From: Macrostomum lignano
Lineage: Eukaryota
NCBI GenBank assembly: GCA_002269645.1
Contig: NIVC01003875.1
Span: 1 to 36,671 of the forward strand
Length of the DNA: 36,671 nt
Reading direction: 5' to 3'
In this document: piece after piece, positions 12,716 through 34,700 of the stretch
Layout: each line of letters opens with the position of its first letter
How positions within the stretch are numbered: the stretch's first letter is position 1
The notes under the pieces: generated by a model
Seen by the model: only the letters and a program-made list of their open reading frames with translations
Database searches by the model: none
Told to the model about the DNA's origin: nothing
Program-made: the position numbers and the translations under genes

Positions 12716-13242
12716 CATGGCTGGTCAGTTCAAGGAAGCATTTAATTTTAGAATGCCTCCTCTTTATTTAGGACAGGCTCACCGCGGCGCAAATCTGGAT
12801 TTTTTCGACAGTTTCAAGCACGGGAATTTCTGCCACCTCGTCCATGCCTAAGGGCTACCGGGCGACCGATCACTCACCTCCTGGAGGGGGACAGAACTGA
12901 GAACACCGGCACCACGGGATCTCCCTGCGCGACACAGTAGCACCAGCTGCCCGTGATCGGCAGGGGTCTGCGGAATGGACGGCAACACCTCCCTTCTGCA
13001 CCCATATTCTGGGAAGCCTTGCAGCTAATTCTAGCGGCAAGTGTGCAGTGTCCGTCATACAAAAGCTCGCAGTTGATAAATCAATCGTTTTTACAAGCCC
13101 GTACTCATGGACAAAGAAGACAAACGCTATAATATCCCTCTCGCAATACAGTTCGAAATAAACTGATACATACTTCCCCACCAACACACTGCGCGCTTTT
13201 TGCTAAAAGTAGTTGGTGAAGTCTCTTGCTAAAGTTTTCGAA

Positions 13243-13395
13243 TTCGATGTTGTGAAATTTTGACCTTGTGAAGTTTCGACCTTGTGAAAGTGGTTGCTAT
13301 TTGAGTTCTCGATGTTATGAAATTTCGACCTTGTGAAATTTCGATCGTGTGAAAGAAGGTGCTTTCGACGTTGTGAAATTTCGAGTTTGTGAAAC
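13243..13395. repeat. Degenerate 16-bp repeats (TTGTGAAATTTCGACC-like, ~7 copies) ending in GAAACCCCC; probable DNA-transposon subterminal repeats
   Basis: Read directly. Unit 2 copy at ~28396-28548. Confidence 0.75.
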
Positions 13396-14098
13396 CCCCC
13401 TTCAATGAATGGCTTCGAAAAGGAACATATTTGGCCCAGCCAGAAATTTGAATCCCTTGGGGAGTGGAGGGAGTGGGCCTGTACAATATCGAAAATATAC
13501 GATTCCCCATTCCCTTGCATTTTCTGTATCCCCTGTCACCCTTTTTCTGCGCTAACACCACTGAATAGAGGCCAGCTAAATTCCCAAAAGACACCACAGA
13601 TCCGAACCACCAAGAGCGCTTTCTTCTGAAAATAAAGTTCGTTCATTTCTTGGCATTGAGTTGGGTGTGTCAATAATTTCAGCATTAACGACAGTTAAAT
13701 TGATCAAATTTGAGTGTTGAGAACTATATGTTCGAATAATTGAACTAAATTTTTATCAATGTGTTTCATTAACTGGTTACTAACTCTTTTAAGGCTTATT
13801 AAGCCGTTATTACCCATGTGAATGTTACAGTTATTATATTTTTTACATTTTAATTACAAAGTTTAGCCTTTCAACAACGACGCCTAATCTGTTTTGCATA
13901 CTTGTCCTGTCTTACATTTACTACAATGAACAACAGTATCTGCTTGTAACTATCTATACTTCGAGATTTGTGTGTCATCTGAAACGAAAGGGTTGGTATT
14001 TTTAGCAAATATATACTTTCACAATCACATTACAGTGTGAGTTACAAACGTACAAATATTACAAACTCCATAAAAATTTACAACCGAAACAAATTCAC

Positions 14099-14217
14099 GG
14101 GGCGCTTTCATTAGGCAAAAATTTCACTTTGCCGAAAAGCACTCTCTTTCACTAGGCCGAACCTTATGGAAGAGCATACTCGGCAATGTGAAGTTTCGGC
14201 TTAGTAACCCCCCCCCC
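14099..14217. mobile_element. ~120-bp MITE-like imperfect inverted repeat
   Basis: Left arm GGGG…TTCATTAGGCAAAAATTTCACTTTGCCGA versus right arm (reverse complement) GGGGG…TTACTAAGCCGAAACTTCACATTGCCGA. Unit 2 copy at 29253-29370. Confidence 0.5.
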
Positions 14218-14330
14218 AAATTCACTAAGGTGGCTTTAAGCTACCTCAAATTTCCGAATTTCAAATCTTCAAACCCAAAAAGCAAAAAACTAAGACAGTT
14301 TTTCACTCAATCCCCCATAGCATTGCTCCA

Positions 14331-14566
14331 CTCCTCTCTACCCTCTCTCCCCTCTACCCTCTCCCCTCTCTACCCTCTCTCCTCTCTAGCCTCTCTCCCC
14401 TCTACCCTCTCTCCTCTCTACCCTCTCTCCTCTCTACCCTCTCTCCTCTCTACCCTCTCTCCTCTCTACCCTCTCTCCTCTCTACCCTCTCTCCTCTCTA
14501 CCCTCTCTCCTCTCTACCCTCTCTCCTCTCTACCCTCTCTCCTCTCTACCCTCTCTCCTCTCCCTA
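14331..14566. repeat. Polypyrimidine minisatellite, 16-bp unit CCCTCTCTCCTCTCTA
   Basis: Read directly. The unit 2 tract (29484-29700) is ~19 bp shorter. Confidence 0.95.
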
Positions 14567-15137
14567 CTTCTTTTCTAAAAGCCCGCTTTCTAAAAGCGCA
14601 AATATTTACAGGTGTAAATTTATCGTCAATTTGATGCTTTTAATCTTCTTTCGACTGCAAACAAAAAGTTGTTCTCGGGGGCTCTTAGCTCTACGCTACT
14701 AAAAGTAGTCTGATGCGCATTTAAATTTTATGAAACTTCACACATCTTTCCGAAAAAAATTATTTCACAATGTTGGCACTAGGCAACAGCAAATATAGCC
14801 CTAACGTTTATTGTAAAGAGTAACCACCTATTATTGTGATAAAAAACGGTTCTCCCGCTAGGCTGAAAGGGCAGTGCTATTAAATAAAGCTGCCTTGAAC
14901 ATGAAACACGCCAAACTTAGGTTGCCGCCTCATAGGCCGCCGGGCGATCACCGGGCGGCTTCGATTAGGATTAAAAAAATCGTCCATATTAAGGCTATAT
15001 AAAGTATTACGAGTAAAAAATCACCATTTCTCATTGAAAAATCAGATCATATTTCATTGTAAAGTGTAAATAAAAATATTTACCGACTGCCCTCACAGGC
15101 GGCCGCGAGGGCGCACACCGCCCACTGTACGCCCCAC

Positions 15138-15272
15138 TTAGTTGTCCCACTGGTCCCAGTGTCCTTCACCAGACTCTTTATTGCCAGCCTCAAAATGCAG
15201 AAAAGTCTTTGTGTCACCGGACTGTCGGTAGATCACCCACGATTTCCGCACAAGCATCGCAAGAAGATGAAA
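15138..15272 (-). pseudogene. Last 135 bp of the piggyBac remnant left at the deleted unit 1/2 junction
   Basis: Matches 30272-30406 with one substitution, then breaks off at the deletion. Confidence 0.85.
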
Positions 15273-15520
15273 AGATGTCTAGAAGCAACAATTTACCATA
15301 CGGTAATTTAAAGGCTGCGTGCATCCAACCCTGGCGCACTTTGGGCGTTTAAGCGACATTGTCACTTAAGCGACTCCCCTGGGCAGGCATACACACGAGC
15401 AGACCCCCACACAGGAGTGTACAGCGGCTTTGACTGTATTTATTTCTTTATAAAATTCGAAAAATTAGTTTTCAGGTAAATTTTCCTGTTTATAATCGAA
15501 GTTTATAAGCCGTGATGTTA

Positions 15521-15861
15521 GGGGGGGGGCGTAGTCCAGCGGTCTAGCGCAGGCTCTGGTGTGAGAGCAACCCAGGCTCGATTCCAAGTGCAGTCACATT
15601 AATTTGGGGCTGAATTGGAATTTCGGCTTGGCTCGCTTGTGCAATTAACGGCCTTGAGAGCCAACCCCCCAAGGCGCAGTGAAGTGTACATGCCTAACAA
15701 TTGATAAAGTTAGGGCCGCTGTACAGTCCTGTGTGAGTGTGTGCCTGCGTAACGTATCCGCGCGCTTGTATGCCTGCTCAGGGGAGTCGGCGGAATGGGC
15801 AGTAATGCCTCTCGCCGGTTGTGTGCCTATGTCGCTTAAAGTGCGCCAGGGTGCACACAAC
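15521..15861 (+). mobile_element. tRNA-derived SINE copy A, unit 2
   Basis: Same as 365-705 apart from homopolymer-scale indels. Confidence 0.75.
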
Positions 15862-18800
15862 CCCCCTGTTTCTAATAAAAAAGCCGTGATGTTCCCTTTT
15901 TTTCAAATAATATAGATGAACCAAAGTTTTGCTGGAAAAACAAAAGACACGCAGAATTTTTATGCACTAGTTTGGTGTTAATTTGTAACTAGATTGTTTT
16001 AGCTGCAGAACCTGAAGTTTTTAAAAGGCCATACATGTATTGTCGGTTAAACTAATCAGCTGATGCATTTCACTAAAAAAATAATATTACGATTTCTGTA
16101 TAACAATCTAAATAACTGTTACAGTGTATCTATTCGTTAACGAAATTTATAAACTCAATTTACTAGACTCATCCTAAACGCTGACTTCGAATAGTAGAAG
16201 TTATTTAGGGTTAGGCGAAGTGACGAAGACTGTTATTATAGCATAACGTGAAAGACAGCGAGTATAAATGAACGAGGCCAGCAGACATAGACCGAAGAGC
16301 CGCTAGGTTCTGACCTTCGCTAGGTTACCGGCACTGCCATCAGAGATGTACCCGCGAAATCGCCGAGCTGCGCCAATCTCCGAGCATTGAAAGCAGACGT
16401 CGCTCCACCACGGCGGAGCGAGTGCGTAGAGAAGCTGAAAGTTTCTGATGTGTCCCTTATTACCCGACTTATGGTAATCAAAGAACACTCACTTCTAGCT
16501 CAATAGCTAGGCAGCCCAGTAAGTCAATTAAAGGTACTTCTTACGTTGACGTCGCTTGGAGATATCTCTTCTGTAGTCTTCGAGTAGATCTCGCTTGTCT
16601 CTATGTGATCTCGTAGATCAGGCGCCTTGATTCTTCAGTTGCTCTGGTCCTGGTTCCTCTTGTACTTCCGATAAGTTCCTCCGGCCGGTATCTTCAGTCA
16701 GGACCAATCAGAGGCCTCGTATCAACAATGGGTACCCTGCGCCGAACAGCGGTTTGAATTAAGCCTCCTTCTTCTAGCAGTGCCTTTATGCACTCTAGGT
16801 ATGGCTCCGGAAACCACTGATAGTCCTCTAAGATCTATCAGGGGCAGTCCTTCTGGAGACTGCAACCAATGGAGTCTAAACAGACTCAAGAGTCTCAACA
16901 GACTCAAATAGACTCAAGTCTCAATAGACTTGAGCGAGACGTCTCTAACACAACGGGCGCAAATAAGGAAGGCTTACCGCAACAACTCGACCGAGTCTCG
17001 ATTGACTTGGTGATCAGGAAGTCCTCCTAAGGCTTCCTCTTCGGAGCTTCTCCTCTCGTCGGGAGTTGGCTCCTGGTCCGCTTCGGACCGCTTGTATTTA
17101 TAGGCAACTTTTTGATCCAAAATAGCATCATTACAAACCACGTGTTGCGCTAAAAGGGGAAAATGGCTCATGGCGTATCATTTTGGTAACATCTTTTCCT
17201 GGTAGCGTGATTCATTCAAAGCTTAGGCGCACATGCGTGTACTTACTTACTTATAGTAGCATTATACGATTATCTTCTTTTAACCTTTTTTAACGGGAGG
17301 TAGAACACTCTACATTTCCATTCCGGTCTTGCGAAACAAACGCTGCAGGCGGTGGCGAACCTCCACTGAGTCAGAAGGCCACCAAAATGGCGGCTCTGAC
17401 GGACTAAGAATACGGGAAAGCTCTGAGACGTATCGAGAATTAGATTCAGCTGCCAGAGATGTCGGGGCGCAATTTGAGAGCGGCTGCTGAGCTCGGACCC
17501 ATGACCGGGAGCTGGAGCTGGTGTGGATGCGCTCACCGATCAGCACTGTCTTTGAACGAGCTACATAGATGGCCCGATTTCGGGTCATCCCGCCAGCCCC
17601 GAAGCGAACGGCCCGCGTTTGCAAAAGTCTATGGCAAATCAACCATCATCTCAGCACACCCGTTGCCGACGGGAATGGCCCGATTTCGGGTCAGCGTCTA
17701 ACAATGTTGCAAAGAGTAGATTACGCAAAAAAATATTATTAGCTTAGAGATGTCATACCTGTAATTATAATAACTCGTTTATAATAAAAATACTGCGGCA
17801 GTTTTCAACAAAACTGTAAAAATTGCTTTTACGAAGTAAGCTTGTTCCCAATGAAGCCGGAATAGTCTAATTACATGATTTATTAGGGACATTTTTAAAG
17901 AGGGAAATGATTTACAGACTGGAGCATCTGCAAGATACGAAAAAGTAAGCTGGTACAATGGGTAGGTATTTAGGTAGGTAGGTAGGTAGGTAGGTAGGTA
18001 GGTAGGTAGGTAGGTAGGTAGGTAGGTAGGTAGGTAGGTTAGGTTAGGGTTAGGGTTAGGGTTAGGCTGAAAATTATTTGGCTTTTTTTACGCTATCACC
18101 TTGATTGCTGAGTGTACAGGCTGAAGTTTGAAGGCAACGAAAATGGAATAAAAAGGTAGACGAGAAGAATAAACAGACGATGCTGTCATATGTCATGCAT
18201 GCATAAATTTTCCATCCTAACTTTTTTATGCGTAGCGTTTCTGTGAAGACACTTATATACGAGTAACAATACAACAGCTTCAGCTTATAGGTTCAAATTT
18301 GTAAATTCTGTCCTACTCAAAGCTAAAAAACACGTATGATCATTGTATGAGCATTATGTCGTGTTCCATTTTAATTAACTAAAAATAAGTTGTTTTGCAG
18401 TTGGAAGACATGTGATGTGTTTTAGGAAAAAACGACTCCACAGATTCATTAAACATTCTATCTGTTCTAAAATTAGCAAAGCATTCGACTTAAGCGACAG
18501 AAGTCCTCGTACACTGTCTTAACAAGTTTTCATTGCTTTCCATAAAGCACCATCCAACCCAGTCAATAGTTTTAGTTTTCACCTGAGATTTCTTGTAAGA
18601 CCATTATAGTTTAAATGTACTACACTTCGCTATGCTTTGATAGCAAATTATGAAGATATGAAATCAATTCTCTATATTGATATGACCAAAACACCAGAAA
18701 TACTTCAGGGGGTGATTTCTGAAATGAAGTGTTGAGATACGGCACACTTTTACCTTCAAGGCATTCTGTATTACAATATTTATGATTTATTACGTTCTAT

Positions 18801-19083
18801 ATGGATAAACTCGAAACCAAAATCAGCGAAAATTGGAAGTCTTGTGTCAAAATTAGCCTCGAAATTAGTGGAAGAGTTGCCTAGATATTGCCAGATTTGG
18901 TTTTATATACTTTAATTAAAAGCTGTCTAAATTTGATGTTCGGCCTGTTTACTGGAAGTTGATTTAATTTAGTGGAAAGAAGATTAACGGGCATAAATAC
19001 GAACAGGAACACTGAAACAGCAGTTTTCCGCTTACTAGCTCGTATGCCATGCCCGCAGCGCCCTGCAGCTGAACCAGACTGCG

Positions 19084-22000
19084 ATGAAAACATGCACCAG
19101 ATTTTTTCGTTACTTTCAACTCATTGTGTTTGGCTTGTTATTTTGGTTTTCTCCATCCGGTACGTTTATTCTGTTTTGATTAGAGTCAGAAAAAACCAGT
19201 TTGCTCTTGCTAAAACGTGGGTTACTAAAAACGCAGAGTGCTGTTCCGGTAGGACGCTTTACTCGTCATCTGGAACGATCGCGTGCCCCTCCTCTGGAGG
19301 CCAGTATTCAAACAATTTGGATGTTTCCTGGTCTATTCGACCACGTGGTGTCAGCCGAATCCGATTCAGCAAGCTGGATGTGGATTCGTGCTGCGACAAA
19401 GTTTTAATTTATGAAAGCGCAATCTACGCATCAAGCAGCTCAGAGAAGTTTCGACTTGTGCATGCAAACGCGACTGAGTCTGAGTTCTGGGTGAATTCGC
19501 CCTTTGTTGTGCGGTTTCGAAGTGACGGGTTTCACACGAGATCCGGATTTCGGCTTTCTTACGAACGCCAGTGGGAATCGATTCCAGGTGAATTTTATGC
19601 CTTACGTTTATAACAGCACTCTGGTTGACTTTTGCTGATTTATTTGATCTCGGATGAAAATGGAATTTCAGCTGCTACTGAGGTCATTCGGCAGAGAAGC
19701 GGTGTCAGACGGAGCCATCCAGATGTCGGGTCCTACCGCAATAACTACAAAAAAGCTTGGAGTATTTACGTGCCCAGAAATTCCCGTGTTTTCATTCGAT
19801 TCACAAAGTTCAACACGGAATCTGGCCGCGACTATCTTAGGATATATTCAGGACTTGTTCCGCGATATCAACACACGGCTCTGCAAGCGATTTCAGGCAA
19901 TCATAGAATTCTTCATCCGTCATACACGTTTTCGCATAGCGTTACCCTAATTTTCACTACTGACGGCTCTGTTGTCCGTGAAGGGTTCGAATTTGAGTTC
20001 AATGTCCGTGAGTGATACAAGACGTCAACAGTATCTGGCAGTTTTTTCAGTTTTATTCAATTCAGAAGTTAAACTGTTCAGTGCAGAAAATATAAGTTAA
20101 AAGTTATGCAATCTTATGTTTATAGTTTCTTTTCTCGGCCAGATACGGACAGAGAAGCAACATAGTTTCCATAGTTACTCGTAGTTACATAAATCTGAAT
20201 AAGTCTCAACATTGTTTATGTTGATGCAGGTTATTTGTACTACGGATTATGCGCCATCGGCCTATCGATTATAATGGATAATTAGTTTTAAGCAATGAGA
20301 AGAGAACTCTTATAAATTCTCTTTAGATTACATAAATATTATCAACTTCCACAAAAAATCTTAACGCTGCTACATTTACTCAGTTTGATACTCTTTACAG
20401 ATGATCATGAATTACTGTGGATCTTTTCAAAATGGACCAGAATGGCCATAGGTGGCTCGAAATTCAGTTTTTCACTGCTTTCTATGGATCGAAATGTATC
20501 AGCTAGGTGTTACTTAGATCTTGAATGTGGAAGGCAAACTTCGGAGATCGCAATGAATTCCGTAAGCCGGGCATTTATCTGCATTAAATTTTCGAAAAAA
20601 GTGCTATATACGAGCGTAATTACTGGTTTAAGTTTTTCTTATAACTTTGCATAGTGAAGGTAATATCTCTTGACCTTTCAAGTTTGCATTCAAAAGCTTG
20701 GACAAATTTAAAGAGCCTCAGATTATATATGAATTGTTTTTGCAATTCCTCCAGACGATCTACTCACAATGAAGATCAGTTAAAAAATTGTACCTGTTTT
20801 CTGGAATCATCTCAGACACTGCTGTCTGCATTCGAAACATCACGTGCAGATTCCGTGGCAGCGGTATCAATGAACTGATTGAATCGACTCCAGCACCTGA
20901 TGGTAAACAACTTTCTTCAATCAGTTTTTGAGACTCTGCATAGATGTTTTTGAAGAAGCGAAGTGTCTGTATTGCAATATTAGCAAAGCGGTTCAGTAAC
21001 TGTAGCAGATTTTGATTATCCTGCTCTAGTTTCCTTCATACATATGAATAACTTTCAGTTAAGCCAGCTTCACTTGAAATCAGCCTGATAAAGCCTGAGC
21101 TGTGGAGCCTCTCAGATAGTTTGATTCGGTTTCGAGCTGTGTCTCAAGCCGAGTGTCGGCGAGTGAGGCATCGCTGCGAGCTGAGGCTTTTCAATGGAAG
21201 CGCAGTCACTGCTGTGCAAGTGAAGCGGGTAAGAATAATGTAACAATGCGTAGTTAAAATATTTAGCATAATATAATATACTTAGAGTAATTGCTATGAT
21301 AGGCGTGTACAACTAAACGATGTACACTGTAGGCCCGTACTGATATGCAGATATACGCAATTGTATTTTCCTTCAATTTACAATACCCAGCTAGCGTATT
21401 TTTATTCTGATACAATTGCTACGTCAAAACTTCAGCAAGCATCACAGCCACGTATTTCTCAGTGTGTGAGCAGAGTTCAAACAGATTTTACTCTGCTGGC
21501 TGAGCTCATCGACACAGTCAATTCTACGATAATTTGTTACAAGCAAGCCGGAACAGTCAACTATTCTCTGCCGGCTATGCAACTGCGTGAGTTGAGTTAA
21601 GATTATGAAGTTAATGCATAAATATATGCGTATAATATAAATAATGTATATAGAGCTCATTAAAAACAGGAATTTTATGTATGCGCATAAAATCACTACG
21701 TTAGAATATATAACAGTATATAGCTATATAAATATACATAAAAATATATATATATAATATATATATATATAAATATAATATATTAGAATATATAATATAT
21801 ATAACTATAGAATCTTCATACGAGCGTAGAAGCATGATTAGCGATATAGAAAAAAAGCGAGAACGATTACGAAAGATTTTAACTGATTTATTTTTGTGAT
21901 TAATTTCATTAATTTTTAATCAAATAATTAACTTATTTGACTCTGTTTTTAAATGAAGTAAAAAGGTGACATTTGCGAGAGTAGGTTTGCAGAGTTTAAA

Positions 22001-23446
22001 TCATTTGTTCAACGTATGTCATATGTACCAGCTGATTTATTCAATGTTTGGAATGTCGAATAAAGAAAGGTATTATTATGATCGGCTCCTTACAATGGTC
22101 ATTTCCTTATATCAGCTGTTCGAGAAATTCAATGGAGATTCCCAGAGTCTACTGAGATCGCTGCGGGTGCTCCAATGCGCATTTTATTAACAACAGCTGC
22201 AAGCATCCGAGGCCTGTCAGCGAAATGTCGGCTGCACCAGGAGTGCGAGAATGGAACCATCGAAGTCCCGATCCGTGTTGTAAGATATAATCAAAATATT
22301 TGATACTTAATGAAGGCAAAAAGAAATAATAATTTTGGCTAAACATATTTGGCATCCGATTAATGTCTATTAAGGTTGATACTATTTGATATATACTTCT
22401 TGTGCGAAGTACTAGCCATATTTCCCACAATATGCATACACCATCAATTATGAAGTTCACTCGTCGTTTTACCTGCTACCACAGGATCGAATCGTCTCGA
22501 CATCTTCGGGAAAAGTATTCCAGTTTTTTGGACGATGGCAGCGTCAAGTGTGCAGCCGCAATGTGTCTTGCGCATTCTCTGTGCCAGGAATGCTCGGTTC
22601 GATTGAATTCAGCCAATTACCTCCAGGTATTGCTGTTGACCTCTCTTGTGATTCATTTATTTCATAACAGCTCATAAAAACATGCGTTCTTAATGCATTT
22701 ACAACCGTTTCTCCGTTTTATTGATTTCAGTTGAACCAAATGACTTACAGCTTAAGTTGATTGATCCTGAGCTGTGGCTACTCAACGGAGCAATTCAGTT
22801 CCGTGCGGTTTCCGAACACGCCTGTCCCAGTGTGAGGCACCGCTGTGAGCTGAGGACGGCTACTAACTATTCGATTCCCGCGACGCTAATAAAGAAGGTT
22901 GTTTTTGTCTGTTGGCAGCATTATGTAGCTCGCTATTTGTGCAAGATAGTATGCTTTGCTTAACTTCAGGATGTCTCGAAGCCCACCGGGTCGCGGTGCT
23001 TCAGCTCGGTGATGTCGCAGTTCTTGGCGTTCGCTCAGCCATCAGACGTAGCGGGTTCCACTGTGAGATGCCGCCTGCTCAACGGCAGCTCTGCGCTGCT
23101 CGTGCTGCCCGAAAAGGGTTTTGGTGAGTTTCGCAGCTGATTTCAGATGTTATACACGAGGAAGCAGCCCTGCTTTAAATATCGCCTCCATCAACAGGAG
23201 AGACGAGGCTGGCGAAGTCTGGGAGCGGCCACTGCTAGCAGCTTCATCAACTACGGCTGTTCTCGCCATCATTGCATTGGTAGCAGTAGTGGCCTGCCTT
23301 GTGCTAATGAGATCTGGTCGGTGGCCACCTTGGAAAAAATCGCCGGATGCGGCAGTAGTGAATGAGTCGGTGAAATGCAACCGACAGTCAGTAACCAATA
23401 TTATGGCGAATCAGCAGGCATTGTAAGCAGCTTTAATGTGATTTGA
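19084..23446 (+). CDS. Same receptor gene, copy 2 (exon-5 TGA at 20770 plus two 1-nt deletions in exon 12; possible pseudogene or soluble variant)
   Basis: Exons 19084-19159, 19237-19587, 19672-20007, 20401-20561, 20755-20902, 21059-21228, 21436-21586, 22116-22279, 22485-22626, 22731-22897, 22970-23123, 23198-23446. I found no difference from copy 1 in exons 1-10. Exons 11-12 have 16 substitutions and deletions at ~23213 and ~23374. Confidence 0.85.
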
Positions 23447-23741
23447 GGCACCAGACTTCATCATATTTTCAGCAATGTCAAATTATTAATCATGCTTGCA
23501 TCCGACTTTCAGCCTGATGACTCAACCGGAGTTTACGTCACGTGAAAAGCCACCAAAAATGACTAATTACTACATACAGAAGACGATCGATACGAGCTAA
23601 AAAACCTAAAAATCTAGGGCAGTAACTTTTTCTAAAATTTTTAACCTAGGTCTATTGCTGCTATAGTTTTACTTTGCTTAAAAGTCAGTAATTACTTTCA
23701 ACATTAGGTGTATATGTATCTGATAATTCGGCAACTTTTGA

Positions 23742-24362
23742 CTCAGCAACAGTCAAAAGTTCTACCCTCCAAATTGCAAAACTTCACACTCACAATTCAA
23801 CCCTCAAGTTACGCAACTAAGCCGCCGCGAGGAAGGGAAAGTTGATTGAATATCAATACTCGTAGTAAAATCATAATTTTTTATGCAATATTTAGTTAGA
23901 ATCGCGATGCGTGTGGGATCCCCTCGCACGCAGTAAGTGCGACGACTCTGCGGGGCATCCCAATGATGAGGCGGCGCAGAAAGTCCTGGGGAAGCCGCTC
24001 CGAAGCGTTTTCAATGGCATGACGCAGAGCTCTCCGCAACATTCTGTGGTGGATTCTCTTTTCGAATGCTACGTTTTAGGAAGTCCCAGACATGCTCGAT
24101 GGGATTCATGTCTGGGGACCGGGAAGGCCAGCGCAGAGTGCGCAGCTGTAGCTGTTCCTTCAGTTGACTAACAGCATCGGCTTGGTGTGGCGGGGCGTTG
24201 TTCCTGAGCTAGGTCTGCTTAATGTCCAGGCCTGGACCATTAAGCAGACCCAAGCCACCCCCAAGCGGCAATAAGCTTTGCGCGTGCCGTAGGTTGCGTC
24301 ACTCGCAATAAGTTAAAAAAATCATCACGCTTAGTGGGGTGGAACTTTTGACTGTTGCTGAG
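23742..24362 (-). mobile_element. Internally deleted Tc1 element, unit 2 copy
   Basis: Same TIRs and transposase remnant as 8589-9210. Confidence 0.9.
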
Positions 24363-27300
24363 TATATCAATATTAACCCGATGTAATAGCCTCTCCTGTA
24401 CTCCTGATGGTCCTGATGCTTTATATAGTATAAAGTAAAACCAATTATCTTGTCATTTACTCAAGGTAGGTAATGCTCAACTGTAGAGCACTAATTAAAA
24501 CAACATTGATCATCAATAAATAACTTTGCAATCCAATAGATAAAATGATTGATTAAATTCTGTGTTTTTGACCTTGATGAAAATTTGAAATTGCGAATCG
24601 ACGGTTTTAAAATATTTGATAAGAAGTATAATCACGCCAATTTATTTCTACTGAAGTTTTTCGTCTGTTTGGTTTGGTGTTTAAAGTTATTGCGAGATTA
24701 TTGCAATTGAAATTTAGATTTAAAATTAATAAGTCTGTAAATTTCATCAATCTTTAGCATCAAGTCTTTAGCAACATGTATATCCGTTTGCTATTATAAG
24801 TTATTTTATTTATAGATGTTTCTTGTCCTTACAGAAGTGACAGCCTACTAGAAGATAGTATAGTAGCTCTAGCTTAGAAAAAGTATTAGCTTAGTTCGCT
24901 TGGACTCGGGTATTCATTAAAACCGCATGAAATTCTAAGATTCGGTGTCAGCGTTTGGGTGGAGTCTAGTGACGAAGTTTATTAATATATTATATAATAT
25001 ATTCAATACCGAATAGAAACGCTGTAACAATTATACAGACTGTACTATAAGAGTTATACTACAAGCTATTAAAGTTCTTTACTGAAATACATCAACCGAT
25101 TAATTTATTGATAATATGGCTTTCTAAAACGTTTAGGCTCTGCAGTTTATTCGCAAACAGTCTAGCTGTACATGAACGCCAAAGCTTATGCATAAAAATG
25201 CTGCGCATCTCATTGTTGCCAACAGAATTTTGGCCAATTTTTATCATGTGAAACATTAAATTCTTCCTTGCCGCAGTGCAAGGGGTGCAAGGGCTTATAA
25301 ACTTCAAATATAAACCGGAAAATGTAATGTACGCTCGTACCTGACACTAGGCATTCGCATTTCGCTTGATGGCTCAAGCAATAAAAATTTAATTACACCG
25401 GGCCGTAGCCCAGTGATCTATAGTGAGGTAGTGTCTGCGGCCCAGGCTCGAGTCAAAGTGCAGTCACATTTATTGAAGTCCTAATTGGAATCTCAGCTTG
25501 GCTCTGCTCATGCAATTAGCAGCCTTGAGGGCCAATCACAAGGCGCAGTGAAGTGTGCATTCTAGACGATAATTAAATAAAGTTAGGGTTGCTGTACACT
25601 CCTGTGTGAGAGGATAATTAAATAAAGTTAGGGCTGCTGTACACTCCTGTGTGAGAGGATAATTAAATAAAGTTAGGGATGCTGTACACTCCTGTGTGAG
25701 AGTATGCCTGTGCGTATGACTGCGTACGTATCCGTGCGATTGTGCTTAGGGGAGTCGTGGGAATGGGCAGTAATGTCTCTCGCTGGTTTTGTGACGAAAC
25801 TTTTTTCTTACTTTTTTATCTTACCCGTATTGCACACATGTATTAGTAGCTGATCTCTGTTAGCATACCATTTGTACAAGCTTACTATAAAAAAACAGAA
25901 ACGACAGCGAGACAGCTTGCTTATCAGGGCATACCTGCAGATATCTCAGATCCTGTAAGCGTCCAAGTTAAATTGCAACCATGGGAGGTTATGTATACGA
26001 CGAACATTCAAATGAAAAAGTGCTCCAATGGTGGCAAAAACTTTCATTGGCAGTAGATTTTGGCACGCTGAAGACACAGGCCGAGTAAAAAACTTGGCTA
26101 AGAATAAAGCATACTCAAGCTATCAAGCCTAAAGCCCTGATAAAATGAAGTACGATCGTAGATGTGTCGTCGGATTGTCAGATCCACCGCGAGATTATTT
26201 TATCTTTCGATCAAATTAGTTTTTTTACAGTTACTTGTTCTTTAGTTTGTGCAATTTCACTCTTGGACGTTTTTGACTCACTAAGTAATTGTTCTTGGTC
26301 ACGCACCAACCCATATAATGGCTGTGCACGCTACTCTCTAGTCGTATGCACTTCAGCTAAGCCGACCACTAAGCAGCTAAAGGGCACGCTCTACTGTCTT
26401 ATAAACTTGCAATCAACTTCCCTCGGTCTCCGAACCCATAAGTTCGCAATGCTATTTGCACTCAGCAACATTGAAAAGTCGCCACTCTTTGCTCCAATGA
26501 GCAATTTCTCTTGAACTTCTAGTAATTCTGAAAAAAATTACTAGAAAACTGATCGGGTAGCTTTAATCCGTCCAACCCTCGCACACCGCTCCCCCCACTT
26601 CATTCCTTAACTCAAGTCTGCCGTGGCGTAGCTGATTTGCGTCACTCGCAAAGATTCAGAGACTTTACCTGCACTCTCAAAAGTGGCGACCTCGAAGGAA
26701 TCTTCGGTGATGGAGAATTTTCGGTGTTACTGAGTATATAGGGCCCGATATATACGATAAGATCGTTTTTAACTCCTATCTCCACAGTGTAAAAGTTCCT
26801 ACGTACGATCAAACTTACGCTACGACAGCTTTAGAGTACGACCCCATAGTTTTTAAATGCGTTCTCGTCAGGACGATCAGATCGATGAAGCGGTGGGAAG
26901 CCAAGGCAGCTGACGCATTGAAATTGAACCTTACCCCGATTGTCAAGGCAACTTCGTGAGTTTTAACAAACATTAAAATTACTCCGCGAATGAATACATT
27001 TTTTACGATAATGAAATTTGAACATACCCACGCGCTTATTGTTGATCGTAATCTAGTCTCTAAAATTTAGATCTAAAAAGACACTAAAGTTTCTTGACTA
27101 ACAGCGCGGTTTTAACTGATATTCATCCATCCATAGATCTTCGTTCATGCATAGAAGAAATGAAGTTTTTTCTGTTTGCAGAACAATCAACCTCAAAAGT
27201 CATCAGTTAATGAATGAACGAATATGAACAAATTGTCAACACAAAATACCATAAAATATTGATTTTTGCAAAATTCATGATATTAATTTCGAGCTGATGT

Positions 27301-29483
27301 GCAAAGCTTTTTATTGCATATTAACAAAATTGTATGAGTCTGTGAAATTCCAACAGAAATTCAAATTTATCATTCTGAATTCTCCTATTTAAGTTTCTAT
27401 TCATCCTTAGATACATACAGATTGTCAATTATGGTTTCTAGGTAAATTGCTCGCAAAAATAAATTAAACTGTCAATAAACTTAACTCGATCAAGAACGGT
27501 TGTTCTTTTGAAAGCAGGATCATTAAGAGCCACTCAAAATAGGCCTTCTGATGACAAAGCGAACTGAACTTATTCGGGGAGCGTTTGATCAACATGATTT
27601 ACTTTGCCAACAACGGATCCCCGGGCACTCGGATCAACCCAACAACGAGATGACCAATCACCAATTAGCCCTTTCTTTGACCCCCTGCCTGTGGCCTCCA
27701 TCCCACTGCTATTGTAACCACTTGTGGGGGTGCAACGAAGCACAAGGAGAGATAACCGCCGATAGTTCAGCTCTGCCGGCAGGATCCCCTCTTCCTCCTG
27801 CCCTCCGCAGGCCTTGCTTGGAATCAACCGCAGTCTGGCACCAAGGCGGTGACCACGGCTATCTCAGGTCATGGCTGGTCAGTTCAAGGAAGCATTTAAT
27901 TTTAGAATGCCTCCTCTTTATTTAGGACAGGCTCACCGCGGCGCAAATCTGGATTTTTTCGACAGTTTCAAGCACGGGAATTTCTGCCACCTCGTCCATG
28001 CCTAAGGGCTACCGGGCGACCGATCACTCACCTCCTGGAGGGGGACAGAACTGAGAACACCGGCACCACGGGATCTCCCTGCGCGACACAGTAGCACCAG
28101 CTGCCCGTGATCGCAGGGGTCTGCGGAATGGACGGCAACACCTCCCTTCTGCACCCATATTCTGGGAAGCCTTGCAGCTAATTCTAGCGGCAAGTGTGCA
28201 GTGTCCGTCATACAAAAGCTCGCAGTTGATAAATCAATCGTTTTTACAAGCCCGTACTCATGGACAAAGAAGACAAACGCTATAATATCTCTCTCGCAAT
28301 ACAGTTCGAAATAAACTGATACATACTTCCCCACCAACACACTGCGCGCTTTTTGCTAAAATTAGTTGGTGAAGTCTCTTGCTAAAGTTTTCGAATTCGA
28401 TGTTGTGAAATTTTGACCTTGTGAAGTTTCGACCTTGTGAAAGTGGTTGCTATTTGAGTTCTCGATGTTATGAAATTTCGACCTTGTGAAATTTCGATCG
28501 TGTGAAAGAAGGTGCTTTCGACGTTGTGAAATTTCGAGTTTGTGAAACCCCCCTTCAATGAATGGCTTCGAAAAGGAACATATTTGGCCCAGCCAGAAAT
28601 TTGAATCCCTTGGGGAGTGGAGGGAGTGGGCCTGTACAATATCGAAAATATACGATTCCCCATTCCCTTGCATTTTCTGTATCCCCTGTCACCCTTTTTC
28701 TGCGCTAACACCACTGAATAGAGGCCAGCTAAATTCCCAAAAGACACCACAGATCCGAACCACCAAGAGCGCTTTCTTCTGAAAATAAAGTTCGTTCATT
28801 TCTTGGCATTGAGTTGGGTGTGTCAATAATTTCAGCATTAACGACAGTTAAATTGATCAAATTTGAGTGTTGAGAACTATATGTTCGAATAATTGAACTA
28901 AATTTTTATCAATGTTTCTTCATTAACTGGTTACTAACTCTTTTAAGGCTTATTAAGCCGTTATTACCCATGTGAATGTTACAGTTATTATATTTTTTAC
29001 ATTTTAATTACAAAGTTTAGCCTTTCAACAACGACGCCTAATCTGTTTTGCATACTTGTCCTGTCTTACATTTACTACAATGAACAACAGTATCTGCTTG
29101 TAACTATCTATACTTCGAGATTTGTGTGTCATCTGAAACGAAAGGGTTGGTATTTTTAGCAAATATATACTTTCACAATCACATTACAGTGTGAGTTACA
29201 AACGTACAAATATTACAAACTCCATAAAAATTTACAACCGAAACAAATTCACGGGGCGCTTTCATTAGGCAAAAATTTCACTTTGCCGAAAAGCACTCTC
29301 TTTCACTAGGCCGAACCTTATGGAAGAGCATACTCGGCAATGTGAAGTTTCGGCTTAGTAACCCCCCCCCAAATTCACTAAGGTGGCTTTAAGCTACCTC
29401 AAATTTCCGAATTTCAAATCTTCAAACCCAAAAAGCAAAAAACTAAGACAGTTTTTCACTCAATCCCCCATAGCATTGCTCCA

Positions 29484-29700
29484 CTCCTCTCTACCCTCTC
29501 TCCCCTCTACCCTCTCCTCTCTACCCTCTCTCCTCTCTAGCCTCTCTCCCTCTACCCTCTCTCCTCTCTACCCTCTCTCCTCTCTACCCTCTCTCCTCTC
29601 TACCCTCTCTCCTCTCTACCCTCTCTCCTCTCTACCCTCTCTCCTCTCTACCCTCTCTCCTCTCTACCCTCTCTCCTCTCTACCCTCTCTCCTCTCCCTA
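29484..29700. repeat. Polypyrimidine minisatellite, unit 2
   Basis: Same 16-bp unit. Confidence 0.95.
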
Positions 29701-30271
29701 CTTCTTTTCTAAAAGCCCGCTTTCTAAAAGCGCAAATATTTACAGGTGTAAATTTATCGTCAATTTGATGCTTTTAATCTTCTTTCGACTGCAAACAAAA
29801 AGTTGTTCTCGGGGGCTCTTAGCTCTACGCTACTAAAAGTAGTCTGATGCGCATTTAAATTTTATGAAACTTCACACATCTTTCCGAAAAAAATTATTTC
29901 ACAATGTTGGCACTAGGCAACAGCAAATATAGCCCTAACGTTTATTGTAAAGAGTAACCACCTATTATTGTGATAAAAAACGGTTCTCCCGCTAGGCTGA
30001 AAGGGCAGTGCTATTAAATAAAGCTGCCTTGAACATGAAACACGCCAAACTTAGGTTGCCGCCTCATAGGCCGCCGGGCGATCACCGGGCGGCTTCGATT
30101 AGGATTAAAAAAATCGTCCATATTAAGGCTATATAAAGTATTACGAGTAAAAAATCACCATTTCTCATTGAAAAATCAGATCATATTTCATTGTAAAGTG
30201 TAAATAAAAATATTTACCGACTGCCCTCACAGGCGGCCGCGAGGGCGCACACCGCCCACTGTACGCCCCAC

Positions 30272-30697
30272 TTAGTTGTCCCACTGGTCCCAGTGTCCTT
30301 CACCAGACTCTTTATTGCCAGCCTCAAAATGCAGAAAAGTCTTTGTGTCACCGGACTGTCGGTAGATCACCCACGAGTTCCGCACAAGCATCGCAAGAAG
30401 ATGAAATCCTAGCGTGTGGAACCAGCGCATGCTCTTTCGGTTTGCGAGATACGGGTGCATTGAGACGTCCAAATGGTTAATCCCGGCCATGCTGGAAGAG
30501 TAGGCAAGCACGCTGGCAGGCTTTTGCACCACCTGCTTTGCAACACCGCGAACCTGAACGCATTCTGCCTTGCCCGCCGTGTCCAGCAAATGCAGAGTCT
30601 TGATGCTGCTTTGCTTCCAGTCGACAAATTTACACGCCAGGAGGTCACTTGAATGTGCGAATGCAGATGAAGTTTGAAGTTTGGTGACAGCCTGCAA
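30272..30697 (-). pseudogene. piggyBac-type transposase C-terminal remnant
   Basis: …LLACKFVDWK…KPASVLAYSSSMAGINHLD…YLANRKSMRWFHTLGFHLLAMLVRNSWVIY… matches the piggyBac pattern KPxxVxxYNxxMGGVDxxD…RKSxKW..L.FxLL…NSxxIY. The third catalytic Asp position reads Asn. No N-terminal part and no TIRs were found. Confidence 0.85.
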
Positions 30698-30923: not shown

Positions 30924-31433
30924 CGACTCTCGGTGACTGTACGCTAGAATACCATTTTTCATACTGGATATTTGTACTTGCGAAAAGTTACGAATGACAA
31001 CTTAGTTTCCTAATGCAGCAGCTCTGTGTTGCAACAGTTAGTTTTTTAATTTTAATTTCGTTGCTAACGGAACAACAGGTACCGTCGAAAAGCTTGCGAT
31101 AAGATGAAATGTCCGTTTTACTTTATTTGCATGTTTCCTTTGCAAAACTGCAGACGTGTACGATACGTGCACACGCATCGTTTTCTGTCGTCTAGAAGCA
31201 ACAATTTACCATACGGTAATTTAAAGGCTGCGTGCATCCAACCCTGGCGCACTTTGGGCGTTTAAGCGACATTGTCACTTAAGCGACTCCCCTGGGCAGG
31301 CATACACACGAGCAGACCCCCACACAGGAGTGTACAGCGGCTTTGACTGTATTTATTTCTTTATAAAATTCGAAAAATTAGTTTTCAGGTAAATTTTCCT
31401 GTTTATAATCGAAGTTTATAAGCCGTGATGTTA

Positions 31434-31776
31434 GGGGGGGGGGGCGTAGTCCAGCGGTCTAGCGCAGGCTCTGGTGTGAGAGCAACCCAGGCTCGATTCC
31501 AAGTGCAGTCACATTAATTTGGGGCTGAATTGGAATTTCGGCTTGGCTCGCTTGTGCAATTAACGGCCTTGAGAGCCAACCCCCCAAGGCGCAGTGAAGT
31601 GTACATGCCTAACAATTGATAAAGTTAGGGCCGCTGTACAGTCCTGTGTGAGTGTGTGCCTGCGTAACGTATCCGCGCGCTTGTATGCCTGCTCAGGGGA
31701 GTCGGCGGAATGGGCAGTAATGCCTCTCGCCGGTTGTGTGCCTATGTCGCTTAAAGTGCGCCAGGGTGCACACAAC
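31434..31776 (+). mobile_element. tRNA-derived SINE copy A, unit 3
   Basis: Same as 365-705 apart from homopolymer-scale indels. Confidence 0.75.
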
Positions 31777-34700
31777 CCCCCTGTTTCTAATAAAAAAGCC
31801 GTGATGTTCCCTTTTTTTCAAATAATATAGATGAACCAAAGTTTTGCTGGAAAAACAAAAGACACGCAGAATTTTTATGCACTAGTTTGGTGTTAATTTG
31901 TAACTAGATTGTTTTAGCTGCAGAACCTGAAGTTTTTAAAAGGCCATACATGTATTGTCGGTTAAACTAATCAGCTGATGCATTTCACTAAAAAATAATA
32001 TTACGATTTCTGTATAACAATCTAAATAACTGTTACAGTGTATCTATTCGTTAACGAAATTTATAAACTCAATTTACTAGACTCATCCTAAACGCTGACT
32101 TCGAATAGTAGAAGTTATTTAGGGTTAGGCGAAGTGACGAAGACTGTTATTATAGCATAACGTGAAAGACAGCGAGTATAAATGAACGAGGCCAGCAGAC
32201 ATAGACCGAAGAGCCGCTAGGTTCTGACCTTCGCTAGGTTACCGGCACTGCCATCAGAGATGTACCCGCGAAATCGCCGAGCTGCGCCAATCTCCGAGCA
32301 TTGAAAGCAGATGTCGCTCCACCACGGCGGAGCGAGTGCGTAGAGAAGCTGAAAGTTTCTGATGTGTCCCTTATTACCCGACTTATGGTAATCAAAGAAC
32401 ACTCACTTCTAGCTCAATAGCTAGGCAGCCCAGTAAGTCAATTAAAGGTACTTCTTACGTTGACGTCGCTTGGAGATATCTCTTCTGTAGTCTTCGAGTA
32501 GATCTCGCTTGTCTCTATGTGATCTCGTAGATCAGGCGCCTTGATTCTTCAGTTGCTCTGGTCCTGGTTCCTCTTGTACTTCCGATAAGTTCCTCCGGCC
32601 GGTATCTTCAGTCAGGACCAATCAGAGGCCTCGTATCAACAATGGGTACCCTGCGCCGAACAGCGGTTTGAATTAAGCCTCCTTCTTCTAGCAGTGCCTT
32701 TATGCACTCTAGGTATGGCTCCGGAAACCACTGATAGTCCTCTAAGATCTATCAGGGGCAGTCCTTCTGGAGACTGCAACCAATGGAGTCTAAACAGACT
32801 CAAGAGTCTCAACAGACTCAAATAGACTCAAGTCTCAATAGACTTGAGCGAGACGTCTCTAACACAACGGGCGCAAATAAGGAAGGCTTACCGCAACAAC
32901 TCGACCGAGTCTCGATTGACTTGGTGATCAGGAAGTCCTCCTAAGGCTTCCTCTTCGGAGCTTCTCCTCTCGTCGGGAGTTGGCTCCTGGTCCGCTTCGG
33001 ACCGCTTGTATTTATAGGCAACTTTTTGATCCAAAATAGCATCATTACAAACCACGTGTTGCGCTAAAAGGGGAAAATGGCTCATGGCGTATCATTTTGG
33101 TAACATCTTTTCCTGGTAGCGTGATTCATTCAAAGCTTAGGCGCACATGCGTGTACTTACTTACTTATAGTAGCATTATACGATTATCTTCTTTTAACCT
33201 TTTTTAACGGGAGGTAGAACACTCTACATTTCCATTCCGGTCTTGCGAAACAAACGCTGCAGGCGGTGGCGAACCTCCACTGAGTCAGAAGGCCACCAAA
33301 ATGGCGGCTCTGACGGACTAAGAATACGGGAAAGCTCTGAGACGTATCGAGAATTAGATTCAGCTGCCAGAGATGTCGGGGCGCAATTTGAGAGCGGCTG
33401 CTGAGCTCGGACCCATGACCGGGAGCTGGAGCTGGTGTGGATGCGCTCACCGATCAGCACTGTCTTTGAACGAGCTACATAGATGGCCCGATTTCGGGTC
33501 ATCCCGCCAGCCCGAAGCGAACGGCCCGCGTTTGCAAAAGTCTATGGCAAATCAACCATCATCTCAGCACACCCGTTGCCGACGGGAATGGCCCGATTTC
33601 GGGTCAGCGTCTAACAATGTTGCAAAGAGTAGATTACGCAAAAAAATATTATTAGCTTAGAGATGTCATACCTGTAATTATAATAACTCGTTTATAATAA
33701 AAATACTGCGGCAGTTTTCAACAAAACTGTAAAAATTGCTTTTACGAAGTAAGCTTGTTCCCAATGAAGCCGGAATAGTCTAATTACATGATTTATTAGG
33801 GACATTTTTAAAGAGGGAAATGATTTACAGACTGGAGCATCTGCAAGATACGAAAAAGTAAGCTGGTACAATGGGTAGGTATTTAGGTAGGTAGGTAGGT
33901 AGGTAGGTAGGTAGGTAGGTAGGTAGGTAGGTAGGTAGGTAGGTAGGTAGGTAGGTTAGGTTAGGGTTAGGGTTAGGGTTAGGCTGAAAATTATTTGGCT
34001 TTTTTTACGCTATCACCTTGATTGCTGAGTGTACAGGCTGAAGTTTGAAGGCAACGAAAATGGAATAAAAAGGTAGACGAGAAGAATAAACAGACGATGC
34101 TGTCATATGTCATGCATGCATAAATTTTCCATCCTAACTTTTTTATGCGTAGCGTTTCTGTGAAGACACTTATATACGAGTAACAATACAACAGCTTCAG
34201 CTTATAGGTTCAAATTTGTAAATTCTGTCCTACTCAAAGCTAAAAAACACGTATGATCATTGTATGAGCATTATGTCGTGTTCCATTTTAATTAACTAAA
34301 AATAAGTTGTTTTGCAGTTGGAAGACATGTGATGTGTTTTAGGAAAAAACGACTCCACAGATTCATTAAACATTCTATCTGTTCTAAAATTAGCAAAGCA
34401 TTCGACTTAAGCGACAGAAGTCCTCGTACACTGTCTTAACAAGTTTTCATTGCTTTCCATAAAGCACCATCCAACCCAGTCAATAGTTTTTTTCACCTGA
34501 GATTTCTTGTAAGACCATTATAGTTTAAATGTACTACACTTCGCTATGCTTTGATAGCAAATTATGAAGATATGAAATCAATTCTCTATATTGATATGAC
34601 CAAAACACCAGAAATACTTCAGGGGGTGATTTCTGAAATGAAGTGTTGAGATACGGCACACTTTTACCTTCAAGGCATTCTGTATTACAATATTTATGAT

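Follow-up and report, generated by a model that had tools for sequence, protein, structure and literature searches.

In copy 2 of a tandem repeat in the genome of Macrostomum lignano (contig NIVC01003875.1, represented here by a window of 36,671 nt; all coordinates refer to positions of this window on the forward strand), a sharply bounded patch at 22986..23777 differs from its counterpart in copy 1 (7829..8625, frame intact) by 19 substitutions and five 1-bp deletions. This patch probably represents a short ectopic gene-conversion tract, an interpretation to which we would assign a probability of roughly 0.6 and which invokes an ordinary event of a known, textbook type. The duplication that yielded copies 1 and 2 would have come first, and non-allelic conversion would then have overwritten a stretch that measures no less than 397 bp (22986-23382) and probably ~0.8 kb (to 23777). 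This stretch takes in the final half-module of the extracellular part, intron 11, the exon for the transmembrane (TM) segment and the tail, and the start of the 3′ untranslated region (UTR), and its putative donor is a different gene of the same family.

The window covers part of a young array in which a ~15.15-kb unit recurs head to tail, with at least three copies visible. As delimited by self-BLAST, copy 1 (the reference version) occupies positions 121..15272 and copy 2, which bears the divergent patch, occupies positions 15277..30406; the two are separated by a unique junction, AGAT (15273-15276). Copy 3 (31070..36671) is partial, as the window ends at the equivalent of copy 1 position 5600, and its tail lies beyond that point. 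The self-BLAST alignment of copies 1 and 2 shows 99.6% identity, with 27 mismatches and 17 gap openings, and outside the patch the copies are ~99.9% identical; over the 5.6 kb that can be compared, copies 1 and 3 differ by 7 indels or gaps and by no substitutions. The possibility that the three copies are mis-joined subgenomes (S, L1, and L2) is rejected, as a divergence of 1.9-2.4% would then be expected in place of the ~99.9% identity seen outside the patch. Among the ten longest open reading frame segments outside the gene, a Pfam search detected a remnant of a piggyBac-type transposase in the spacer (30407-31189) and nothing beyond it, and Rfam, run over the entire window, gave no RNA family match.

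Every unit of the array carries a gene whose product is a lineage-specific membrane protein, predicted to be single-pass, with a pair of CUB domains at its N terminus. The spliced model of the copy 1 gene (3927..8390), guided by the protein P0001, comprises 13 exons (3927-4002, 4080-4430, 4515-4850, 5244-5404, 5598-5745, 5902-6071, 6279-6429, 6959-7122, 7328-7469, 7574-7740, 7813-7966, 8041-8267, and 8358-8390), with GT/AG at every junction except one. Its product consists of a signal peptide, two CUB domains, repeated Cys-containing modules, a predicted TM segment, and a short tail, in that order. Both CUB domains match PF00431 (24.2 and 42.6 bits, with E values of 4.5e-5 and 8.5e-11) above the Pfam cut-off of 21.4, and the second one additionally shows a sub-threshold likeness to PF23062 (the C. 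elegans M02D8.5-like third CUB domain). The predicted TM segment, TAVLAIIALVAVVACFVLM, averages 2.99 on the Kyte-Doolittle scale across 19 residues and precedes the basic sequence RSGRW. In these two features, the N-terminal pair of CUB domains above the Pfam threshold and the single predicted TM segment, the window gene resembles CUB-domain membrane proteins, but it differs from them in that the four Cys-containing modules that follow the CUB domains matched no Pfam family and in that protein searches for relatives found none outside M. lignano. The AlphaFold model of P0001, obtained from a 4-sequence alignment, is unusable (mean pLDDT of 31, pTM of 0.25). The earlier note treated exon 12 as the last exon, and its exon structure was incomplete in this respect: exon 12 ends with a GT donor after ...GESAGI (8267 in copy 1 and 23422 in copy 2) and is followed by a 33-nt exon 13 that encodes PDDSTGVYVT* (8358-8390 in copy 1 and 23513..23545 in copy 2). 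Exon 13 is identical in copy 1, copy 2, and the distant paralogue L001 and is also found in all related protein models, three of which (P0002, P0003, and P0007) show a 100% match to window exons.

No differences of any type separate copies 1 and 2 over the 6588 nt from 16398 to 22986, a stretch that includes exons 1-10. The patch begins there, and 19 of the 27 substitutions that distinguish the two copies are found within 751 nt (22986-23736); 17 of the 27 are in the patch core (22986..23382), which consists of 397 nt of exon 11, intron 11, and exon 12 with a divergence of 4.3% and would correspond to the minimal conversion tract. The substitution rate is 25.3/kb in the patch versus 0.56/kb outside it, and no cluster among 200,000 uniform simulations exceeded 10 substitutions, versus the 19 observed (scan statistic, P<5e-6). 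The sharp boundary after identical exons 1-10 that the earlier note reported is borne out by these figures, and its estimate of about ten scattered substitutions elsewhere agrees well with the 8 found outside the patch. Exon 11 of copy 2 (22970..23123), which codes for the latter half of the membrane-proximal extracellular module, has three synonymous and three non-synonymous (I>T, P>S, and Q>R) substitutions, the three amino acid changes clustering beside a conserved cysteine (I-G-P-Q to T-G-S-R). Exon 12 (23198..23422), coding for the stalk, the TM segment, and the tail, has 10 substitutions and two 1-bp deletions and is 225 nt long, versus 227 nt in copy 1. The 16 exonic substitutions of the patch are divided, as the same note had it and with exactly the codon changes that it listed, into 8 synonymous and 8 non-synonymous ones (in 7 codons), a count that holds only if the two exon 12 deletions are masked. 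This synonymous excess is modest (dN/dS of 0.34, Fisher p=0.037), and with frameshifts in copy 2 as assembled and a TGA codon in exon 5 (see below), it goes too far to say that both versions evolved apart as functional coding sequence. An A>G change (ATG>GTG, in the segment 23370..23375) creates a GT donor, TCG|GTGAAA, which is absent in copy 1 and is used by P0007.

Transitions and transversions among the patch substitutions are in the ratio of 14:5. The five 1-bp deletions (after positions 23212, 23374, 23547, 23724, and 23777) are confined to copy 2, and the patch has a 7-fold excess of indels (Poisson, 6e-4). The patch also includes changes in the 3′ UTR and a substitution in intron 11 (position 23161), where copy 2 has the same state as L001; this intronic match indicates that the tract comes from genomic DNA and is not confined to exons.

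The distant paralogue L001 (contig NIVC01000829.1) provides a third sequence and an outgroup for the comparison of the two copies. Outside the patch, all informative sites (574 of 574) group copy 1 with copy 2, leaving L001 as the third and the two other groupings with 0 sites each, whereas inside the patch 11 sites group copy 1 with copy 2, 11 group copy 1 with L001, and 5 group copy 2 with L001 (Fisher, 1e-24 versus outside). When the patch substitutions are polarized by L001, the outgroup state is found in copy 1 at 11 sites, in copy 2 at 6 sites, and in neither copy at 2 sites. As the outgroup states are split between the copies, both versions are true diverged lineages and not the result of errors stacked on one copy. 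Indeed, errors confined to copy 2 can be rejected as an explanation on the basis of these 6 sites, the 14:5 ratio of transitions to transversions, and the presence of the copy 2 alleles in other models. It is from the discrete cluster of differences, which is beyond chance, and from the phylogenetic incongruence between the tract and its flanks relative to L001 that we infer conversion as the mechanism. The change of tree support inside the patch and the copy 2 alleles common to other family members also uphold the initial description of the patch as a gene-conversion-like mosaic.

On a larger scale, the gene family is demonstrably a mosaic between paralogues. Introns 1, 3, 4, 5, 7, 8, and 9 of the window gene are 70-79% identical to those of L001; identity reaches 94-100% in intron 2, in the block from exon 6 to exon 7, and across exons 10-13 and introns 10-12; and past the stop codon it falls to 60%. 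With 97.4% identity and 6 mismatches, exon 12 of copy 1 is nearer to its L001 equivalent than to that of copy 2, from which it is separated by 10 mismatches and 2 deletions. The 3′ module (exons 10-13) forms a block of mosaic sequence when distant paralogues are compared and seems to have been exchanged repeatedly among family members, in keeping with the previously proposed shuffling of the TM/tail module and existence of other members of the family. A bolder version, which we consider unlikely, would make exons 10-13 a cassette that is moved repeatedly by gene conversion among array members, homeologues, and distant paralogues, with the evolution of the ectodomain uncoupled from that of the anchoring/signalling tail and with the copy 2 patch as the latest event. 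Such uncoupling of ectodomain and tail by module exchange happens in some immune-type receptor families.

The derived alleles of copy 2 at positions 22991, 23062, 23068, 23107, and 23277 are shared by two other M. lignano proteins, P0005 and P0004. A further relative, P0007, belongs to a set of gene models with UniProt entries of its own, separate from the GenBank annotation of Mlig_3_7, and this set presumably derives from the earlier ML2 assembly. Its exons 2 and 8 are 100% identical to those of the window, and its tail has the copy 2 states at positions 22991, 22995, 23352, and 23370 in an intact frame; its agreement with copy 2 at only 4 of 6 informative sites could reflect a further mosaic copy or, alternatively, instability in the consensus calls. 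A protein search with the frame-corrected copy 2 tail and with its out-of-frame readings added only P0006, as well as P0007 via its cluster, and none of the protein models searched equals copy 2 at all sites. At the DNA level, no donor was found, L001 being the only paralogue locus compared and the other relatives being known as proteins. L001 itself is rejected as the donor, as it is 84-88% identical overall and, in the tail, resembles copy 1 slightly more than copy 2. Because the patch departs from copy 1 by ~4% across exons 11-12 while its 3′ flank is of the window type, the sequence probably came from a diverged copy within the same array or from a homeologous copy in this neopolyploid genome, and not from a distant paralogue like L001. 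The recipient is more likely to have been copy 2; the copy 1 tail is found in the window-type models P0002 and P0003, so that the copy 1 version looks like the majority state of the array.

As assembled, copy 2 reads ...GETRLAKSGSGHC* and, owing to the 1-bp deletions in exon 12, its product ends at a TAG codon (23236-23238), short of the TM segment; apart from these deletions (after 23212 and after 23374), the sub-frames are each open. The sequence at one exon 12 deletion site is GGCTGGCGAAGTC as assembled, GGCTGGCGGAAGTC in the putative in-frame donor type, and GGCTGGCCGAAGTC in copy 1, and a second pair of sequences that bears on these deletions is GTGAAATGCAACC versus GTGAAAATGCAACC. Most likely, both deletions are long-read consensus errors at places where the donor differs from copy 1. 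Three of the five patch deletions, including both of those in exon 12, are located at points where a donor single-nucleotide change would lengthen a homopolymer (for example, GCC>GCG, as in P0004 and P0005, followed by the loss of one G), and P0007 reads in frame through the first of the exon 12 deletion sites. Should the two deletions be real, copy 2 would encode a truncated product devoid of the TM segment. In addition, exon 5 contains an in-frame TGA codon in both copies (20770..20772 in copy 2 and 5613-5615 in copy 1) where the intact paralogue L001 has CGA; P0002, P0003, and P0007 skip exons 3-5 (645 nt, in frame) and thereby avoid this codon. With the two exon 12 frameshifts in copy 2 and the exon 5 TGA in both copies, the function of copies 1 and 2 appears doubtful.

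The main alternative to gene conversion, though a less likely one, is an assembly or consensus artefact, whereby the copy 2 version of exons 11-12 would be real elsewhere in the genome (in a further array member, a homeologue, or a paralogue) and would have been put into copy 2 of the contig when read correction, consensus building, or polishing mixed reads from near-identical repeats; the physical copy 2 would then lack this version or have it in a different form. The known assemblies of M. lignano are based on PacBio CLR reads. Mlig_3_7 was built by Canu from PacBio CLR reads and polished by Pilon with Illumina and RNA-seq reads (PMC5730564), which makes such an origin conceivable; chimeric scaffolds account for 36% of the length of this assembly, collapsed or expanded haplovariants are also described for the M. 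lignano genome, and its three subgenomes are 1.9-2.4% apart (PMC10733133). The patch resembles the long-read switch and polishing artefacts reported for Mlig_3_7 (PMC10733133) in that its divergence of 2.4% matches that of the subgenomes and in that its indels are enriched. That all five are deletions in copy 2 could signal a poorly supported or mixed consensus, as could the three deletions at prospective homopolymer extensions, and the comparison of copies 1 and 3, with its 7 indels and no substitutions, shows that indel noise prevails between the copies. Also consistent with an artefact are the location of 23 of the 24 patch differences in transcribed segments (binomial, 0.03) and the mismatch between P0007 and copy 2 at 2 of 6 informative sites. 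However, long-read chimeras usually switch over kilobases, and the patch, at only 0.4-0.8 kb, is far shorter than the reads; if multi-mapping reads were assigned at random, a run of 17-19 consecutive sites would not be changed in one copy while the other stayed untouched. Two points speak against polishing with RNA-seq reads as the only cause: the intronic change at 23161 cannot stem from spliced reads, and the exon bias is no longer significant (p=0.26) once intron 12, an intron that does not vary in the family, is left out. Further, P0007, from the second gene-model set, also links a window-type body to a copy 2-like tail.

Reversing the polarity of the event seems quite improbable. The patch could then be a relic of older divergence, the rest of the 15-kb unit having been homogenized later through long-tract conversion or unequal crossing-over, or it could be copy 1 that received an L001-like tail. 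Each copy does have derived states (11 sites in copy 2, 6 in copy 1), exon 12 of copy 1 is unusually close to L001 and its tail could be the imported one, and concerted evolution is generally common in tandem arrays. Yet the copy 1 tail of the window-type P0002 and P0003 appears to be the majority state (the tail of copy 3 is outside the window), and homogenization of 14 kb on either side that spares exactly 0.8 kb would call for two events with close breakpoints. Rapid divergence in place, by local hypermutation or by positive selection on the juxtamembrane, TM, and tail exons of one copy after the duplication and with no import, is hardly credible: it could account for the packing of seven amino acid changes into two exons, with three of them beside the conserved cysteine, but not readily for the synonymous half of the exonic changes, the dN/dS of 0.34, the derived copy 2 alleles common to other family members, the accompanying changes in intron 11 and in the 3′ UTR, or the lack of any differences in the preceding 6.6 kb.

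If real, the patch would be a clean and datable case of short-tract ectopic gene conversion in M. lignano, and a literature search found no account of gene conversion in the genus Macrostomum. Given the recent whole-genome duplication and the three subgenomes of this organism, exchange between paralogues or homeologues bears on how duplicates are homogenized or diversified. The practical weight of the case is greater as a caution: with frameshifts in the patch and an in-frame stop codon in the genes, the annotation of this array, and any dN/dS value or copy number inferred from it, hinge on the correctness of the assembly consensus.

Interlocus conversion between tandem paralogues is familiar from the human gamma-globin genes, from the exon exchange between the red and green opsin genes, and from the KIR and MHC genes. 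The copy 2 patch resembles those systems in its clustered differences over a few hundred base pairs, with sharp borders in otherwise near-identical duplicates, in the shift of tree support inside the tract, and in the patchwork sharing of alleles across the family. It differs from them in that no DNA-level donor was found and in that M. lignano is a neopolyploid with three subgenomes, so that the donor could be a homeologue and not a classical paralogue. Another parallel, if the exon 12 deletions are real, could be the micro-conversion of CYP21A2 by the defective paralogue CYP21A1P, as the frameshifts of the imported patch would likewise inactivate the last large coding exon of the recipient; in contrast to that system, the deletions in copy 2 are more likely consensus errors, and the recipient, with the TGA codon in its exon 5, may already be non-functional.

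The two full-length copies of the head-to-tail repeated unit (~15.15 kb) in this 36.7-kb window, copy 1 (positions 121-15272) and copy 2 (15277-30406), are 99.6% identical (27 mismatches and 17 gap openings), and the partial copy 3 (31070-36671) differs from copy 1 by no substitutions and 7 indels in 5.6 kb. A full alignment of copies 1 and 2 revealed no differences of any kind over the 6588 nt of positions 16398-22986, exons 1-10 included, in which the earlier note had likewise seen none. The next stretch of copy 2, 22986-23777 (7829-8625 in copy 1), carries 19 substitutions (at 22986, 22991, 22995, 23062, 23068, 23107, 23161, 23277, 23288, 23298, 23306, 23342, 23352, 23369, 23370, 23381, 23382, 23625, and 23736; 14 transitions and 5 transversions) and five 1-bp deletions (after 23212, 23374, 23547, 23724, and 23777), compared with 8 substitutions and 12 indel events in the ~14.3 kb outside it. 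The substitution rate is thus 25.3/kb in the patch versus 0.56/kb elsewhere, and the largest 751-nt cluster in 200,000 uniform simulations contained 10 substitutions, against the 19 observed. The patch is real, and its distribution is clearly non-random. Its 3′ part, 23383-23777, which lies in a segment of low variation across the family, has only 2 substitutions and 3 deletions but is still above the background (P=0.02).

The window has a G+C content of ~40-46%, and no Rfam families were found in it. The junctions between the units differ: a mere 4 nt (AGAT, 15273-15276) link copies 1 and 2, whereas a 783-nt spacer (30407-31189) lies between copies 2 and 3, and its last 120 nt also form the start of the window ahead of copy 1 (1-120). 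The spacer region includes a remnant of a piggyBac-type transposase (30302-30739, minus strand; PF13843, E 7e-5) and a segment, 30698-30923, with a 96% inverted match to 2907-3131. A CT-rich 16-nt motif (CTCCTCTCTACCCTCT) is tandemly repeated 14.5 times in copy 1 (14331-14562) and 13.5 times in copy 2 (29484-29696), a length difference of 17 nt. Common to the copies are a (GGTA)n satellite (2804-2887, 17961-18044, and 33874-33961) and a 45-nt repeat (10411-10549 and 25564-25702). A ~700-nt element located 5′ of the gene (2163-2847, 17320-18004, and 33234-33917) has a 93% inverted match upstream of the paralogous gene at L001, the locus of the GenBank protein P0001 (positions 6910-7611 there), and is probably a dispersed repeat or a transposon fragment.

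The copy 1 gene was modeled with P0001 (BOX15_Mlig014562g1) as a guide and comprises 13 exons (3927-4002, 4080-4430, 4515-4850, 5244-5404, 5598-5745, 5902-6071, 6279-6429, 6959-7122, 7328-7469, 7574-7740, 7813-7966, 8041-8267, and 8358-8390). The translated exons are 100% identical to the UniRef models P0002, P0003, and P0007 of the flatworm Macrostomum lignano and 56-88% identical to P0001, from the same species, which identifies M. lignano as the origin of the window; protein searches found no relatives outside M. lignano. In the encoded protein, a signal peptide precedes two CUB domains (PF00431 at 24.2 and 42.6 bits, cut-off 21.4) and four more Cys-containing modules, for which no Pfam match was found. 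Then come the hydrophobic segment TAVLAIIALVAVVACFVLM (Kyte-Doolittle 2.99) and a short tail with PDDSTGVYVT as its last residues before the stop; structure prediction was unusable (pLDDT 31). The exon pairs 6/7 and 10/11 (5902-6429 and 7574-7966) encode similar Cys-containing modules of ~105 residues, with about 45% identity between exons 6 and 10, a duplication internal to the gene. Exon 11 supplies the latter half of the membrane-proximal module, and exon 12 supplies the stalk, the transmembrane (TM) segment, and the greater part of the tail, in line with the earlier description of these two exons. That description lacked exon 13: as in P0001, exon 12 ends at a GT donor after ...GESAGI.

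All 16 exonic substitutions previously listed for exons 11 and 12 were recovered exactly, 8 of them synonymous and 8 non-synonymous in 7 codons, a count that is valid only with two deletions in exon 12 masked. The Nei-Gojobori dN/dS of 0.34 (Fisher p=0.037) is weak evidence for the claim that the two versions diverged as functional coding sequence. The earlier interpretation finds partial support; it left out the frameshifts and a stop codon in exon 5. In exon 12, copy 2 lacks the C of CTG GCC GAA (copy 1 position 8056) and the G of AAG ATG (8219). As assembled, its reading frame runs to ...PEKGFGETRLAKSGSGHC and a TAG stop (23236-23238) ahead of the TM segment; in the other two frames, the TM and tail sequences stay open. 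If real, these frameshifts would leave a truncated product without the TM segment. They are, however, probably consensus errors, because P0007 keeps its frame through the first deletion site, no sub-frame shows other damage, and at each of these non-homopolymer deletions a donor SNP (GCC>GCG and AAG>AAA) would lengthen a homopolymer. The differences between the copies are mostly 1-2-nt changes in homopolymer length (G10, C6, C9, and others; e.g., at 365-366, 510, 609, 1194, 9427, and 14208), typical of long-read consensus noise, which bears on the trust to be placed in any single-base indel of the window. The in-frame TGA in exon 5 (CAA TGA) is present in both copies (5613-5615 and 20770-20772), whereas the intact paralogue at L001 has CAG CGA. 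In P0002, P0003, and P0007, an in-frame skip of exons 3-5 (645 nt) avoids this stop, with loss of the second CUB domain and the module after it. The members of the array may be pseudogenes or exon-skipping isoforms.

Copy-2 alleles also occur in other gene models, as judged at the protein level. The out-of-frame models P0004 and P0005 have them at 23062 and 23068 (FHCEM), and P0005 has them at 22991, 23107, and 23277 as well, with copy-1 alleles at 23288-23306. Both models read RDEAGG, which corresponds to GCC>GCG at the first deletion position; copy 2 is this version minus one G. P0007 has exons 2 and 8 of the window type (100% identity) and a tail (DVSKPIGSRCF...ACFVLM...SPDAAVVNES/PDDSTGVYVT) that is copy-2-type at 22991, 22995, 23352, and 23370 and copy-1-type at 22986 and 23298. 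Thus, a second set of gene models also joins a window-type body to a copy-2-like tail. At 23370-23375 of copy 2, an A>G change (ATG to GTG) creates the splice donor TCG/GTGAAA, which is not found in copy 1 and through which P0007 joins exon 13 in frame; splicing there would leave out the second 1-bp deletion and make the cytoplasmic tail 18 residues shorter.

L001 (contig NIVC01000829.1, GCA_002269645.1), with 84-88% overall identity to the window gene, served as the third sequence. Its state at the 19 patch sites is that of copy 1 at 11, of copy 2 at 6, and of neither at 2. Each version thus has derived states, which means that the patch is no mere accumulation of errors in copy 2. Copies 1 and 2 group together at every one of the 574 informative sites outside the patch; within it (7829-8227 in copy 1), they do so at 11 sites, 11 unite copy 1 with L001, and 5 unite copy 2 with L001 (Fisher 1e-24). 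In exon 12, copy 1 lies nearer to L001 (6 mismatches) than to copy 2 (10 mismatches and 2 deletions). The 3′ flank of copy 2 is of the window type (identical to copy 1 and unlike L001 at 73 sites); therefore, if the tract extends to 23777, its donor would be a close relative of the unit rather than an L001-like gene. Identity between copy 1 and L001 is 70-79% in introns 1, 3, 4, 5, 7, 8, and 9 but 97.6% in intron 2 (4431-4514), 94-97.6% across exons 6 and 7 with intron 6 between them (5902-6429), and 95-100% from exon 10 to exon 13 with introns 10, 11, and 12 (123 of 123 positions in intron 12 and exon 13), falling to 60% straight after the stop codon. This block pattern is the mark of earlier exchange between distant paralogues, centred, like the copy-2 patch, on the 3′ module; the blocks at intron 2 and exons 6-7 probably represent older conversion tracts of the family.

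The best reading of these data, with a probability of about 0.6, is the gene conversion suggested earlier, stripped of its claim of functional divergence: tandem duplication would have been followed by ectopic conversion of a short tract of copy 2 (at least 397 bp, probably about 0.8 kb) from a divergent array member or a homeologue. Its main rival, an assembly artefact, appears considerably less probable. M. lignano carries three subgenomes 1.9-2.4% apart, and 36% of the length of Mlig_3_7 is in chimeric scaffolds (PMC10733133); that assembly was built from PacBio CLR reads with Canu and polished by Pilon with Illumina and RNA-seq reads (PMC5730564). The homopolymer noise within the window fits an artefact, as do the 7-fold enrichment of indels in the patch, all of them copy-2 deletions (Poisson 6e-4), and the location of 23 of the 24 differences in transcribed segments (p=0.03), although this exon bias disappears once the family-invariant intron 12 is excluded (p=0.26). 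Against an artefact, the patch is far shorter than a switch at read length, affects only one copy, includes an intronic site (23161) with the L001 state, and has a counterpart in the join seen in P0007. An opposite polarity, with the patch as a relic in an otherwise homogenised unit or copy 1 as the recipient, is unlikely, and accelerated divergence in place is highly improbable given the synonymous changes, the clean flanks, and the alleles shared with other gene models.

Gene conversion is a well-known mechanism, and the value of this ectopic conversion into copy 2 would be mainly that of a documented example from a difficult neopolyploid genome and of a warning for its annotation.
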